Positions 33,135 through 47,352 of a DNA stretch of 64,000 nucleotides are shown piece by piece; the stretch's first letter is position 1, and each line of letters begins with the position of its first letter. The position numbers were made by a program, and so were the translations under genes. The stretch is from Piromyces finnis finn (taxonomy: Eukaryota; Fungi; Neocallimastigomycota). The notes under the pieces were generated by a model, which searched no databases, was not told the DNA's origin, and saw only the letters and a program-made list of their open reading frames with translations. The stretch lies in contig MCFH01000008.1 of assembly GCA_002104945.1 (NCBI GenBank), positions 1,054,001 to 1,118,000 on the forward strand, given 5' to 3'.

Positions 33135-36100
33135 ATGAAACATAATAATACTTCATTGAATACAGAATCTATTAGAAATGAAAGAACTGGTGTAATAATT
33201 AACGAAGAAAATAATAGTATCTCTGAAAATGAAAATGAGGTTGAGGAAAGTACGAATGAAAATGGGAATGAAATAAATAAAGATACTACCAATGAAAGTG
33301 AAGATGAAAATAATGAAGATGAAAAATTAATTAAACAACAAAAAGGTAAATATATATATATATATTTTTTATACAAATAAATATAAATTGTTTCGCATTA
33401 TTAGAATAATTGTAAAAAAATATTTCAATAATCGTGTTAATAACAGTTGTTTATTTAAAAAAAAAAAAGTAACAACCACCACACAACACTTTTTGAATAA
33501 ACTATTTGAATACATTTGATCATTTAATGTAACATTTTTATTTCTTGGTAGATTATCATCATAATAAATAGTCAATATATTATGCAATATATTAACAAAA
33601 GTTTTTTAAAAAAGGTTTTATTATCTATTAAATATATTTCAATATATAATTTAATTAATTTATGAATATATCAATTTATATTAAAAAGAATTTTATTAAA
33701 ATATAAAAATTTAAAAAAAAATATATAAATAATTTAATTTTGTACCAAAATTCAACTTTTTTTAATATTTAACAAAAAAAAGAAATGTAAAAGGTTTAAA
33801 GAGGAATCAACCTTCACAATAATAAAAATAAAAAAGAATAATTTAAAAACAGAAAAAAAAATAATGAATTAATTATTTCTATAAATGCTAGTTATTTAAT
33901 AATATTATTAAAAGCATATTTATACATTGTTAATTTATTATATTTTTTATATAATATAATTTATAAAAAAAAAAAAAAAAATGAAAAATTACATATAAAT
34001 ATATAAATATCCATTTTAAAATAATATAATAAAATCTTGTCATAACAATTAAAATTTAAAACCATTTCAACAATAAAACCAAAAAAAAAAACATACGTAT
34101 AAAATAAAATAAATAATTTATTAAAACATAAATAATTAAAAAAAAAATAGAGAAAAAAAAAAAAGATAAGAAGAAAAGTAAAGAACCTCAATCCATTCAA
34201 ATAAAAAAGTATACAGTTTTTTTGGTAAGTGTATAATAGTATAATTATAAAATATAAATATAATAATTTCAATTAAAAAAATTATAAAACTCTATGATAA
34301 TGGAAGTATATAATAATAAAAAAAAAAGAGTAATAAAACAATTGAAAGATAATAAATAAAAATATATACAAACTTATCAATTAATTACTTCCAATGATAC
34401 TATCTTAATAATTAATACTTATTAGTAAAAAAATAAAAAGAAAAAAAGATTATTTATTACCTTTCAAAAAAATAATATATAATTTTTATGTAAAATAAAA
34501 TTTTAGTAAAATAGTATTTTTAAATAAAATGGAATAAATTTTCTTTATCATAATAAAAATAAAATTATTAATGAAAAATAGAATAAGAGTATTAATAAAA
34601 AAAAAAGGATTTACTAATGTTTATTACTAAATTTTTTGATTTTACAATTAATTCTTTATTACACTCAAAAAAATCAATGAAAAAAATAATAATAGTTAAT
34701 ACTGCACTATCTCTGGCATTTACTAATATTGGTACTAGGATATTATATGAATTGGATTAGTTTACTATTCTATTGGGAACTGCCTTTATGTAAGTTTCAA
34801 TACATGTTATATTCTTTTATATATAAATTATATTATTTAATAATAAACTTTCTTAAAAAATCATTATATATAGATATCTTTTTATCTTTTTCAGATGTAC
34901 TTTTGGAAATGCTTTTTAATAGTCCAAACAAAGTTTCACCTATTCCACTTTATAATAGTTTGATTCCTTATACTTTTTTTTTAATATTATCAAGAGAGAA
35001 GCATCAATTGTATAATATATTGTGGTTTATCTCTATTACAATAATATATTCTCAAAAAACCATGAAAAATCTTTTACTTCATTTGTTTATTTTTACATTG
35101 CTTTTTTCAGGTATATAATAAATATATAATTACAAGAAACTAAATTAATAATAATAAAAAAGAAAAATGATAATTTTACTTTTTAAACCAAAATAGAATA
35201 TTCATCTTTACCTTTCAAAATTAAAAGAATTAATTATTTTAGTGTTAATAGTGAAATCTTAATAAAATTAATAATGATGATAATAATGATGAAATCCTTT
35301 TTACCACTAAAATCATTTTTCAAACCTTCACAACTCATAAAAAAAATTTTTATTTTCTAATTAGCATTTTATTTTATATAATTTTATATAGCAATTTATG
35401 TTATCTATATTTGTGTAATTAATCAAGTCGTTTATAAAGATATTGCTATAGCCTCAATTGTTTGGCTTGCAAAAATAAAACCAAAAAATTATCAAATATT
35501 TGATAAGAAAATTTATAATATTCTTTTAGAATCTAGTTTTTCATTAATTTATATTATAATTATTTTAGCTATCATTTGTACGCTAAAATATAGCTCAAAT
35601 AATTATAAGAAAAAAATAGAACTAAAAGAACATATATTATACCTCATAAAAGAAAATAAAAAATTAAACGAAATTCAAAAGTAAGTTATTAGTTTTTTTT
35701 TTTTTTATCATCATCATCATCGCAATAATAATCTTTAATTCATTTTATATTTTGAAATTCAATGATATTTATACAATCATTAGAAAAAAATTATATAAAA
35801 ACTTGGATCAAGATCAATTTTTATATAAAGTTATTTCAATATTAGATAATATAAAAAAAAAGAATAGTAAGTAATCATACTATACGCTTAAAAAATATTC
35901 AATTATAAAATCTATATATTAATTTTAATATATTTGTTTTTATATTTATTCTTTAATAATAGTATATAATCAATCATTAGTTAACGATATTGATAATTCA
36001 ATTTTTTTAATACTCTCAAATAAAAATATTTTTGAAAACTTTGATATAGAAGAAAATATCCTTTATATTATATTAATAATAATTTAAATATTTACCTTTT

Positions 36101-36776
36101 TTTTTTTTTTGGCTAGTAATTATATTTATTATTATCCTTAATGGTAATTTCGTTTTTTCTTTTAAAAATATCCACATAATAATATAGAAATATATAGATA
36201 TTTAAATGTTATTACAGAATACGACTCTGTTTATTCTTTTTCAACAATAAAAGATGAAGAAGACATGGAGAAAAAAAATAAAGATATGAATAAAAAAAAT
36301 AACAGCAATTTTGAATTTCCATTATTTAGAAACCCTAGTATTAACATTTATGAAATTGAAGAACATTTAAAAACTTGGATGGATTTCAATTTTGATATAT
36401 TTAAACTTTCCAATATAACAAATTGCCAACCAATTTTTTATTTAGGAAAGCATATTTTTGATCAACATAATTTTAATAAACATTTTAATATTAAACTATC
36501 GACATTAGAATCCTTCTTAACAACAATGGAAAATCAATATCATATGGTATATATATCGCCCCTCTTTTTTTTTTTTATATTCATTATTGATATTTTATTT
36601 TCAATTCACAATTAAAATTATAAAATAATAAATAGTATAATTGAAAAAATATTAACAATAATAATAATAATAATACTAACAATAATAATAATAATAATAC
36701 TAACAATAATAATAATAATAATACTAACAATAATAATAATAATAATACTAACAATAATAATAATAATAATACTAAC

Positions 36777-36819
<43 letters not shown>

Positions 36820-38138
36820 TATGGAAACCCCTTTTCCTAAATATATCATTTAAAACAATAATAATTTTATTAGGCATTACCTTACCATAATAATATACAT
36901 GCAGCGGATGTACTACATGCTATGAATTATTTCATTTCACATCCAGTACTAGATAATTTATTAACTATTGAAGAAAAATTTGCATGCATTATTTCTGCAA
37001 TCATTCATGATATTGATCATCCTGGTATAAATAATTCCTATGAAATAAAACATTCTGAACCACTATCTGTTATCTATAATAATAAATCGGTAGTGATATA
37101 TTTTTTTATATATTATTATAAAACGTCAATGATGTTTTTTTTTTTATAATAATAATAATAATTAATAATATAATTTTATCCTTTGAAAATCTAAATTATA
37201 GGTCTTAGAAAATCATCATTGTGCATTAGCATTTAAAATACTACATGAATATATAAATTGTAATATTTTAAAAAATGTCACTAAATCCCAGTATACCTAT
37301 ATAAGGTCATTAATTATAGCAATGGTTCTTGCAACAGATATGGCTTGTCATAAACAATTTGTAGATGAATTCACTGAAAAATTAAAAAATCAAAGTAAGT
37401 ATTATTATAGAGATTATTATTCATTGTTGCTAGAAAAAAAAAATAAAGAATTGAAAAAATAAAATTTAATATATTTTTACAAAAAAAAAAAAAAAAAAGA
37501 AAAATTTATACTAATTTTTTTTCTTTCTTTTCTTCGATTTCTTATATAAAATGAATAGCTTTTAATATTGAAGATAGTAAAGATAGAAAATTACTATTAT
37601 GCATATTAATTAAATGTGCAGATATTTCTAACCCAACCAAGATTAATAAAATATCAGTACAATGGAGTAATCGTTTATTTAAAGAAAACTTAATACTGGT
37701 TAGTAAATAAAGTTTAATATATAAAATAAATTATAGAAAGAAAATAAAGTACTAATTTGATTACAATTGTTTATTTCATAAAAAAAAAAATAGAGTGTTA
37801 ATGAGAAAAAACATCAAAATTATAATTTATCACCACTACTAAAAAATAACTGTACATCAAAAAGTGAAAATCAGACAAGTTTTATCAAAATATTTGTGAA
37901 ACCTATTTATCAATTATTAGGATCATTTTTAGAAATAGATGATTTTATTGCCATAAGACAATTAGAAGAAAATTATAATTTCTGGGAAGAGTAAGTATTT
38001 TTACCTAAATAGTATTTTTTTTTTTAAAAAAAAGTCAATATTATTAATTTTCAATTCTTTATATTTTTTTATATATATGTATAATTTTTTTTTTATTATT
38101 ATCCATATGAACTAATTTTTACTAGGTATAATGGATAA
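33135..38138 (+). CDS. Multi-pass membrane class I (HD-type) 3',5'-cyclic nucleotide phosphodiesterase, ~736 aa, 13 exons: 33135-33345, 34151-34224, 34696-34789, 34874-35110, 35392-35680, 35784-35866, 35963-36055, 36176-36546, 36874-37089, 37202-37394, 37559-37698, 37794-37990, 38126-38138
   Basis: Catalytic motifs PYHNNIHAADV, IIHDIDHPG, SVLENHH, LATDM, KCADISNP, NQTSFI; hydrophobic helices in exons 2-5; all 12 junction phases agree and exon lengths sum to 2211 nt. The catalytic domain is secure; attachment of exons 1-2 rests on phase matching only. Confidence 0.85.
36056..36175 (+). other. AT-AC (U12-type, minor spliceosome) intron in the PDE gene, 120 nt
   Basis: 5' end ATATCCTTT (U12 consensus RTATCCTTT); TCCTTAAT at 36135-36142 (U12 branch consensus TCCTTAAC); ends CCAC at the first AC after the branch site; removal restores the frame (DIEE-N-NNIEIYRYL). 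Confidence 0.82.
36655..36818. repeat. Compound (AAT)n repeat with a 24-bp higher-order unit containing TACTAAC, 5 copies, in a PDE intron
   Basis: tactaac at 36674, 36698, 36722, 36746, 36770. Confidence 0.9.
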
Positions 38139-44565: not shown

Positions 44566-47352
44566 TTACAATTCAAAGGATGATCTCTTGTTGAATAAAA
44601 TGTTCATCAAGTTTTTTAAATCTTCCAAGCTTCCGCTATGGGCATCTTCAATATCTTCAATTTCAAGACTAAAGAATAATTTGTTTGATTGTTGAATTTC
44701 ATTAATAAATTCATTATTACTTGTAACATTATTTCCATAGGTAACATCCGTAATCATGGTATTATTAGCAATATAAGGAGAGGTAACTTCAAAACCGTAG
44801 AAATCAATGGTTCTATCTGGATTAAGACGTGGTAATGGTGCCTTCTTAACCTTACCATAACCAGTAACATAATCTGGGAAATATGGTTGTTCAGTACCAT
44901 AAATATTATAAGTACTAACCAAGTATAATGGTAAGATATCAGTAGTTTCTGAATACTTGTGACCAAGTATTTCGTCAACATAATTCTTGTAAAGAACACG
45001 AACTGGTTTGAATAAATCACGGTAGAATGGGAATGGTGCATTTCTAAAGTATCTGTAGGTAGTGATGAAATATTCGCCAAAGTAACTCATAATAACAGAA
45101 TAGGTATTGAAGAAATCTTCATGCTTACTTCTTTCATAATCTAATTCATCTTCAGGAATAACATCATGTAAATTGTATTTTGGATAGAATTTCTTACTGA
45201 AAAAGAATCGTGGGTGAACATAATTAATAAAGTAATGATTATTAGCAAGGTATACAAATCTTTCGGAAATACCTGGAATCTTATCTAAATACATTTCAAT
45301 GGCATGGATATTTTCTGAATCAGCTGCTGATTCTGGAAGAATTTCTGATTGATGAATAATCTTAACTCTTTGGTTGGAAGATTTTATCCAAGATAACTCA
45401 CTATCAACTTCTCTTTGGGTAACAATAAATATATTACCCTTGAACCAAGGAAGGTACATATCAATAGAACGCATGGAATACTTTAATTCATTTATAACAT
45501 TGTTATTATTTGGTTCTGCATTTTTTAAAATATAAACAAAGGAAATATCCTTTGCCCATTGCCACTCATCACTTAAACTTTTTCCATTATAGGATAAAAG
45601 GAAGTCAACTTCACTAGATTCTCTGTCACTAATTTCTTTCTTTGGACCTGAAATGGCTTCCTTTTTATCCAAGTAGTCACTAATGATGTTTAATTTATAT
45701 TGGTACACAATTTGTTTAAATTTGTAAATACTTTGTTCCTTAAAAAGACTTCCAACTGAATCAGTAATATTATTACTAAAAGAATTGGTTTTATTAAAAA
45801 TAGGCATAATTTCTTTTTCCACTTCAATATATTCTTCTTTTTCAAATTCAGATGGATCTGGATATCTAGTTACCATGTATTCAGTAAATTCATATAATGA
45901 TTTTTCTTTGGTGTAGGCATCATTGAAATTATAAATTAAAAGATTAGTGTGAGTCTTGTATAAATTGAAATATCTTCTATTTCTTCTGGAATCATCAGTA
46001 ATTTTTCCAAATTTAATAAATTTATCAGCAATTGGACCAGAAACAATTTTTACTGAATAATCATTTATAGTTCTGTTGGCTGGTAAAGTATAACCCTTGA
46101 AACTCTTTGCTTTTCCCTTTCCTCCGAATTTCTTTGGAAATTCTTTATGTTTAGTAACATATTGAACAAATGTTTGGTAAAGATAAATAACTTGTGGTTT
46201 GTATGGACTTCTGAATCTATCAGAGCAAACAATTTTTAATTCATCCTTAAATAATTGACGATATGGTTCATATAAATCACGATAAAATACATGGCCAGTA
46301 TGATATAAATCACGGTACTTGAATTCTTTATCAAAGTATTTTCTAATAATTTCACGAGTGTAATACTTTGTAGCTTGGAAAATTTCATGAATCATATTTA
46401 ATCTAATAATTTCATCAATTTTGCTTTTTTCAAGATCAGCGATGTGACGTCTATAAACCTTTGGGTAAAAAGTTTTACTGGTGAAGAAAAATGCAGGGTG
46501 TACATAATTATTTAAGAAAATATCATCATTGAAATAAATAAAACGTTCTGTAATACCAGGGATTTTATCGAAATATAATTCAATAGTTGTAGAATCATAA
46601 GTTGGGAAAACATGTTCGGGGAAAATATCTCTATGATAAATAATTTTTACTCTTGGATTTGAAGTATCTAACCACTTTGGAATTTGATCATTAGTAACAA
46701 TGTAAATTGTACCTCTATGCCATGGTAAATACTTTTTTAAAGAACGAAAAGAATAGCGAAGTTCATCGGCTGAACGATCTCTACTGTTATATTCTCTAAT
46801 ACCACCGTTATACTTTGACTTAATATCTAAGAAATCAACATCATTGCCATCAACCCATGTATAAACAATAGATATATCTTTAACCCATTCCCATTCCGGT
46901 TCAAGTTCACCACCTTGATAATTGACAATACATTCGGTTTCATTATATTTCTTATTTTCGTCAATTGGGCTATCATATAGAATTTCTTCAGCGTTATTTT
47001 CGTTATTGTTGTCATCATCAACAATATTTCCGTTATTGTTATCATCAACATTATTTTCGTTATTGTCATCATTTTCAAAATCATTGTTATTATCTAAAAT
47101 GTCATTAATTTTATACTCTTCATGAGCATAATCTTCAGTGTCTAAATATTCTTTATCATTTTCATCTTTATCACTTTTTAATAACTTTGAATTATCATTA
47201 AGAATTTTTTCAGCAAAATTAGCTTGGTCATTTAATAAAATACCTTCAATATTATCTACATTTTGATTTACTTTTGAGCCATTAAATATAAGGAAAAAAA
47301 TACCAACGGTAAGAAGAGTTAATAAAATGATAAAATCTTTTTTATACAACAT
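44566..47352 (-). CDS. Stealth-family sugar-1-phosphate transferase, type II membrane, intronless, with two tandem Stealth modules (928 aa)
   Basis: CR1 DISIVYTWVDGND; CR2 DELRYSFRSLKKYLPW..IYIVT..IELYFDKIPGITERFIYFNDDIFL; CR3 HTGHVFYRD..DRFRS; CR4 IYNFND; second copy DISFVY, ELKYSMRSIDMYLPW, IEMYLDKIPGISERFVY; N-terminal TM FIILLTLLTVGIFFLIF. Confidence 0.92.
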   Translation of the reverse strand: MLYKKDFIILLTLLTVGIFFLIFNGSKVNQNVDNIEGILLNDQANFAEKILNDNSKLLKSDKDENDKEYLDTEDYAHEEYKINDILDNNNDFENDDNNENNVDDNNNGNIVDDDNNNENNAEEILYDSPIDENKKYNETECIVNYQGGELEPEWEWVKDISIVYTWVDGNDVDFLDIKSKYNGGIREYNSRDRSADELRYSFRSLKKYLPWHRGTIYIVTNDQIPKWLDTSNPRVKIIYHRDIFPEHVFPTYDSTTIELYFDKIPGITERFIYFNDDIFLNNYVHPAFFFTSKTFYPKVYRRHIADLEKSKIDEIIRLNMIHEIFQATKYYTREIIRKYFDKEFKYRDLYHTGHVFYRDLYEPYRQLFKDELKIVCSDRFRSPYKPQVIYLYQTFVQYVTKHKEFPKKFGGKGKAKSFKGYTLPANRTINDYSVKIVSGPIADKFIKFGKITDDSRRNRRYFNLYKTHTNLLIYNFNDAYTKEKSLYEFTEYMVTRYPDPSEFEKEEYIEVEKEIMPIFNKTNSFSNNITDSVGSLFKEQSIYKFKQIVYQYKLNIISDYLDKKEAISGPKKEISDRESSEVDFLLSYNGKSLSDEWQWAKDISFVYILKNAEPNNNNVINELKYSMRSIDMYLPWFKGNIFIVTQREVDSELSWIKSSNQRVKIIHQSEILPESAADSENIHAIEMYLDKIPGISERFVYLANNHYFINYVHPRFFFSKKFYPKYNLHDVIPEDELDYERSKHEDFFNTYSVIMSYFGEYFITTYRYFRNAPFPFYRDLFKPVRVLYKNYVDEILGHKYSETTDILPLYLVSTYNIYGTEQPYFPDYVTGYGKVKKAPLPRLNPDRTIDFYGFEVTSPYIANNTMITDVTYGNNVTSNNEFINEIQQSNKLFFSLEIEDIEDAHSGSLEDLKNLMNILFNKRSSFEL

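Follow-up and report, generated by a model that had tools for sequence, protein, structure and literature searches.

A probable minor-spliceosome AT-AC intron in a predicted membrane-type phosphodiesterase gene of Piromyces finnis

How does a reading frame that stops short of its own catalytic domain reach it? The question is raised by a gene of the anaerobic gut fungus Piromyces finnis, lying in a stretch of 64,000 nucleotides (nt) of contig MCFH01000008.1 (positions 1,054,001 to 1,118,000; hereafter, the window), whose product is predicted to be a membrane-type class I 3',5'-cyclic nucleotide phosphodiesterase. The exon starting at 35963 runs into a TAA at 36085-36087, its sole GT or GC being the unconvincing GTTAAC at 35980, and the downstream reading frame is open only from 36166. 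An earlier note on this DNA had placed between them an AT-AC intron of the minor (U12-type) spliceosome; all its coordinates hold (5' splice site at 36056, branch motif at 36135, first AC at 36174-36175, no AG between the latter two). The elements concerned are as follows.

36056..36175, + strand: probable AT-AC intron, 120 nt, phase 1, with U12-type signals (alignment gap and BLAST breakpoints)
36056..36064, + strand: 5' splice site ATATCCTTT, preceded by A at 36055; exact U12-type consensus, 9/9
36135..36142, + strand: TCCTTAAT, the motif for the branch site; its A at 36140 or 36141, which lies 34-35 nt before the 3' end, is the candidate branch nucleotide
36143..36175, + strand: T-rich spacer ending ...AAAAATATCCAC, with AC at 36174-36175 (read from the sequence)
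36085..36087, + strand: in-frame TAA met if the intron is retained (read-through ...DIEENILYIILIII, then stop)
35963..36055, + strand: exon before the intron, 93 nt long, reading (I)YNQSLVNDIDNSIFLILSNKNIFENFDIEE; its counterpart in an intron-less relative (L004) is about 90% identical in amino acids
36176..36546, + strand: downstream exon, 371 nt, holding the start Met of the public gene model; 86.5% nucleotide identity to L003, a contig of the same relative

We consider it very probable that 36056-36175 is a genuine U12-type AT-AC intron, as the earlier note had it, because the site is colinear with its orthologues, the intron is present or absent as an exact unit, a relative yielded a transcript retaining it, and a chytrid has an AT-AC intron at the site.

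The boundaries follow from the orthologues. In alignments to both a genomic contig (L003) and a complementary DNA (cDNA) contig (L001) there is one clean 120-column gap, which corresponds to 36056-36175, and the BLAST breakpoints are at 36058/36176. A short repeat (ATA) allows the boundaries to be shifted by +1 to +3 with no change in the messenger RNA, and only 36056-36175 has known termini (AT..AC). The junction 36055/36176 falls in phase 1, forming the codon A+AT and an open frame NNNIEIYRYLNVITEYDSVY...; excision of exactly these 120 nt yields ...FENFDIEE-N-NNIEIYRYLNVITEYDSVY, reading FENFDIEE-N-NNIEIYRYL. We also enumerated the GT-AG alternatives, and the sole pair that keeps the frame, 35980 to 36270, would remove 57 conserved residues.

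The signals at these boundaries are those of the minor class. The 5' splice site consensus and the branch sequence are the features by which U12-type introns are defined (PMC3584512), and both are present here in addition to the AT-AC termini: ATATCCTTT at the orthologue-defined boundary agrees with /RTATCCTT, TCCTTAAT at 36135-36142 agrees with TCCTTRAY, and the intron begins with AT at 36056-36057 and ends with AC at 36174-36175. As described for this class (PMC3584512), the intron is not in phase 0 and is the single one of its type among the GT-AG introns of the gene; its phase 1 also agrees with the tendency of minor introns to avoid phase 0 (PMC10639083). The surrounding DNA is only 17% GC (14-26% across the window), and in this composition the motifs themselves are not rare, hence the argument rests on their position. 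From counts in shuffled sequences we estimate that the 5' motif would fall exactly at an independently defined boundary with a probability of about 5e-5 per position, and the branch motif within 55 nt of the other boundary with a probability of about 3e-3. TCCTTAAT is the only such motif on the + strand of the window, and GTATCCTT does not occur in the window. The second copy of ATATCCTT, at 45545-45552, is probably a chance match; the sequence there is higher in GC and looks like part of another gene's coding region, and no branch motif is close by. In human U12 small nuclear RNA (snRNA), the sequence that binds the branch site is GUAAGGAA.

For the orthologues we used several transcript sources. 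With the downstream exon as query, a full HMMER search retrieved one close relative (P0001, contig L001), and a word search with P0001 produced P0038 (737 amino acids, aa), P0039 (626 aa) and P0040 (654 aa), the last being represented by five separate Logan RNA assemblies (L080-L084). As P0001 and P0040 are each encoded by one uninterrupted open reading frame on the contig, they are transcripts. cDNA contigs from all four sources read DIEE/K-NNN-I/LEVYRYL and continue with NVIT, and they are equal in length to the predicted P. finnis junction, at the nucleotide level too.

Genomic metagenome contigs (L003-L012) represent the closest sampled relative, with 86% protein identity. In these contigs the neighbouring GT-AG introns that were compared are kept in place, and exactly these 120 nt are absent. 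The intron-less site lies at 4722-4801 of L003, likewise in L004-L012, and only the AT-AC intron is lost there. The opposite state is found in P0041 (contig L002), which has 85% identity to the public P. finnis protein P0042. Its downstream introns are removed, and its open reading frame begins within the AT-AC intron (...TTTTTAAAATATCCAC/ATAATAAT, the exon side being ATAATAATATAGAA); the 3' end of the intron, AAAATATCCAC, is conserved between the window and this transcript. Thus, a second species bears the intron and kept it in an assembled transcript. In the maximum-likelihood tree, (P0041,(window, L004)), the trio has support of 99/98 and the inner pair 87/80. L004, which lacks the intron, is nested among intron-bearing genes, and this points to a precise loss in the L004 lineage. 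When metagenomes were scanned for GAYATHGARGARAATATCCTT, the pattern of the 5' junction, the 67 loci recovered were all chance matches, none of them orthologous.

Chytrid phosphodiesterases, too, are alignable with this gene across the linker that holds the intron site. The orthologue of Cladochytrium replicatum (P0045; NCBI assembly GCA_025526935.1, L085) has an annotated AT-AC intron of 68 nt at 1924-1991 of L085, with the structure AAC AAA AAT G/ATATCCGG...TTTCTTGAC TGCGTATCCCAC/CA ATG GAC, where 12 nt follow TTTCTTGAC and the end reads ...CCCAC/CA. It is the only one of the 16 introns in its gene with termini other than GT/GC-AG, and colinearity with three chytrid orthologues lacking an intron at this place (P0159/L086, P0054/L087 and P0061/L088) fixes its boundaries. 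Both introns are in phase 1, and in both species the split codon is the tenth residue back from a conserved W/Y-L. The two introns thus share an orthologous phosphodiesterase, the phase and the site to within one codon; both have AT-AC termini, begin with ATATCC and finish with ...CCAC. They differ in length (68 vs 120 nt), in the 5' site, which is ATATCCGG in the chytrid, and in the branch, where the chytrid has TTTCTTGAC with its A 13 nt from the 3' end. A recent gain of the intron is ruled out by this orthologue. The simplest history is one ancient AT-AC intron with repeated losses: other chytrids no longer have it, and the sampled species nearest to P. finnis has lost it precisely. The earlier note had proposed checking orthologues for the same intron, and it proved to be present in the L002 species and at the C. 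replicatum site, and absent from L003-L012. The C. replicatum intron also suggests minor-type splicing in that chytrid order. In Entophlyctis luteolus (L089, about 1363-2179), there is a GT-AG intron in phase 0 seven codons downstream, at a non-homologous position and unrelated.

By the textbook mechanism, the U11/U12 di-snRNP (small nuclear ribonucleoprotein) would bind ATATCCTTT and TCCTTAAT (36135-36142), with A36140 or A36141 as the candidate branch nucleotide. The first downstream AC (36174-36175), 34 nt away and so farther than usual, would then serve as the 3' splice site, and 36055 would be joined to 36176 to give ...FENFDIEE-N-NNIEIYRYL...; if the intron were left in place, the frame would stop at 36085. 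The earlier note also raised rate-limiting control of expression; a regulatory role through slow splicing is a guess, prompted by the one retained-intron transcript of a relative.

The P. finnis data were assessed by the share of sampled words found in sequencing runs. Four runs (X1-X4) of one organism, which we guess to be RNA, contain 0.47-0.51 of 266 sampled 31-mers of 35380-38000 (standard error about 0.03). The share to be expected is 0.52 if every exon but no intron is counted, 0.37 if counting begins with the exon at 36176, and 0.58 with the AT-AC intron fully retained. Thus, transcription seems to include the upstream exons, and the introns seem to be largely spliced out, although the word share does not demonstrate the junction itself. 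The protein searches, one of which had a strict E-value cut-off that fragments of 216-293 aa could escape, returned no transcript product of P. finnis.

Several observations weigh against a U12-type intron at 36056-36175. No P. finnis read or contig spanning the junction stands behind 36055/36176. The U12-like motifs alone are not over-represented in the AT-rich window, where ATATCCTT occurs 2 times vs 6.0 expected from shuffles, and TCCTTAAY 2 times vs 8.8. MAFFT sets the chytrid intron one codon away, although the one-residue gap responsible may be placed on either side. An Rfam search of the whole 64-kb window found no minor snRNA, the presence of these RNAs in the genome resting on the published survey (PMC10639083). 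Finally, 34 nt separate the branch motif from the 3' splice site vs an optimum of 11-13 nt (PMC3584512), and the spacer, being T-rich, resembles the polypyrimidine tract of U2-type introns.

The last two features are what one would expect of an AT-AC intron excised by the major (U2) spliceosome, with the U12-like motifs, common in DNA of 17% GC, being coincidental. U2-type AT-AC introns have 5' sites resembling GTAAGT with A in place of the G, which counts against this explanation, as does the 9/9 match to the U12 consensus exactly at an independently defined boundary. Moreover, ATATCC is found in the intron of the chytrid orthologue too, with its branch motif at 13 nt, the canonical distance, and a T-rich spacer is uninformative in this genome; we hence regard removal by the U2 machinery as unlikely. 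The public annotation, in which P0042 starts downstream, and the lack of a P. finnis junction read would also agree with the 120 nt remaining unspliced in P. finnis, the gene being split or a pseudogene and the catalytic half alone being made. Yet the upstream exons are all open, with intact GT-AG sites and 74-76% identity to the orthologue proteins, the intron is common to a relative (about 80% protein identity) and a chytrid, and the observed word share of 0.47-0.51 is nearer to that expected with the upstream exons (0.52) than for the catalytic half (0.37), so that this alternative seems still less likely. The least probable one, which we would give hardly any weight, is that the donor at 36055 is joined to another acceptor, for instance one of the AGs at 36186-36187 and 36216-36217. 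Each of these is in phase 1 and preserves the frame, and the introns of this gene normally end in AG; but their use would cost 4 or 14 residues (NNIE...) found in every orthologue, the intron-less genomic one included, and AT-AG pairings are reportedly disfavoured (PMC3584512).

If the intron is of the U12 type, its branch spacing is unusual, as the earlier note had pointed out. A branch-to-3' splice site distance of 11-13 nt is the typical optimum and important for recognition, although it is not among the defining sequences (PMC3584512); the P. finnis value is 34-35 nt. No branch-like motif in the intron sequence is nearer to the 3' end than 36135-36142. Folding of the intron and the spacer revealed no significant RNA structure (z = -0.3) and none that would shorten the path from the branch to the 3' end. 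We infer that the distal motif at 36135-36142 is the branch site used. The 13 nt from the chytrid branch A to the 3' end is canonical spacing; the same ancestral AT-AC intron shows 13 nt in the chytrid vs 34 nt in P. finnis. In the third species (L002), there is no branch motif in the last 43 nt of the intron; therefore the motif, if conserved, is even farther from the 3' end, and the distance is probably about 44 nt, assuming that it lies just upstream of the record start. It is possible, though we lean slightly to the contrary, that the minor spliceosome of anaerobic gut fungi lost the tight rule of branch-to-3' spacing. The spacer at 36143-36173 contains neither AG nor AC, and under this reading the first AC after such a T-rich spacer suggests choice by scanning rather than by a measured distance.

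The surprise expressed in the earlier note at a minor intron in a fungus was overstated, since both P. finnis and Neocallimastix californiae had already been described as having minor introns together with most or all of the minor snRNAs (PMC10639083). Minor splicing in P. finnis is thus known; the intron considered here is from the same organism and of the same class as those in that survey. The survey drew on genome annotations, and as the intron is outside P0042, it was probably not counted. What is new is an intron outside the public model, its age, its precise loss in the nearest relative, and the spacing of 13 vs 34 nt.

The corrected gene model is as follows.

34132..38138, + strand: phosphodiesterase gene, mapped part; 12 exons, 672 codons open
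34132-34224, 34696-34789, 34874-35110, 35392-35680, 35784-35866, 35963-36055, + strand: first six mapped exons
36176-36546, 36874-37089, 37202-37394, 37559-37698, 37794-37990, 38126-38138, + strand: last six mapped exons
38126..38138, + strand: terminal micro-exon G TAT AAT GGA TAA, giving the end ...FWEEYNG and stop; absent from the public model

The 672 codons are a lower bound, as the mapped part leaves out the first exon, which bears the start codon and is located upstream of 34132. The model contains no stops and is 74-76% identical across its full length to the cDNA-derived P0038, P0039 and P0040; its remaining 10 introns are all GT-AG. The public protein P0042 (305 aa, 'HD-domain/PDEase-like protein [Piromyces finnis]') matches the exons of the window residue for residue. 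Its PF00233 (PDEase_I) domain scores 241.5 bits vs a cut-off of 24.8 (1e-71), which assigns it to class I, and the gene product contains the HD metal-binding motifs HNNIHAADV and HDIDHPG.

The earlier note had expected a mis-annotation here, and P0042 indeed begins at MDFNFDIF in the exon 36176-36546, 3' of the AT-AC intron. It lacks at least 364 N-terminal residues, including membrane-like segments, as well as the final 3-codon exon, since it ends at a TAA overlapping the GTAAGT donor at 37991. A GT-AG intron of 135 nt starting at this donor and the last exon of 13 nt restore the ...EYNG end (FWENYNG or FWEDYNG in the orthologues). The known length of the phosphodiesterase is thereby more than doubled, from 305 aa to at least 672 aa, and a protein annotated as the catalytic half alone would become a membrane-anchored enzyme. 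The case reveals a systematic fault of annotation, as predictors restricted to GT-AG introns split genes at minor introns in these fungi. It is also a clean example of an ancient minor intron shared by two fungal phyla, lost in other chytrids and precisely removed in a close relative, and the matched pair of 13 and 34 nt helps to make a lineage-wide relaxation of branch spacing testable.

Hydropathy of the model protein shows three strongly hydrophobic segments N-terminal to the linker, and the site of the AT-AC intron falls in this linker, which connects the membrane region at the N-terminus with the catalytic domain. The N-terminal region encoded at 34132-35680, missing from P0042, has several hydrophobic segments. 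The linker motifs LDxDSP..., SSNQLF.PNL... and DV..WL are common to chytrid proteins named PDE7A by NCBI, hence the membrane-type architecture predates the gut fungi.

The next intron of the gene (36547-36873, GT-AG) carries a 24-nt tandem repeat, AATACTAACAATAATAATAATAAT, at 36648-36819 (7.2 copies, 97% match). Each copy contains TACTAAC, the classic yeast branch-point sequence, giving about seven equivalent branch sites in a row.

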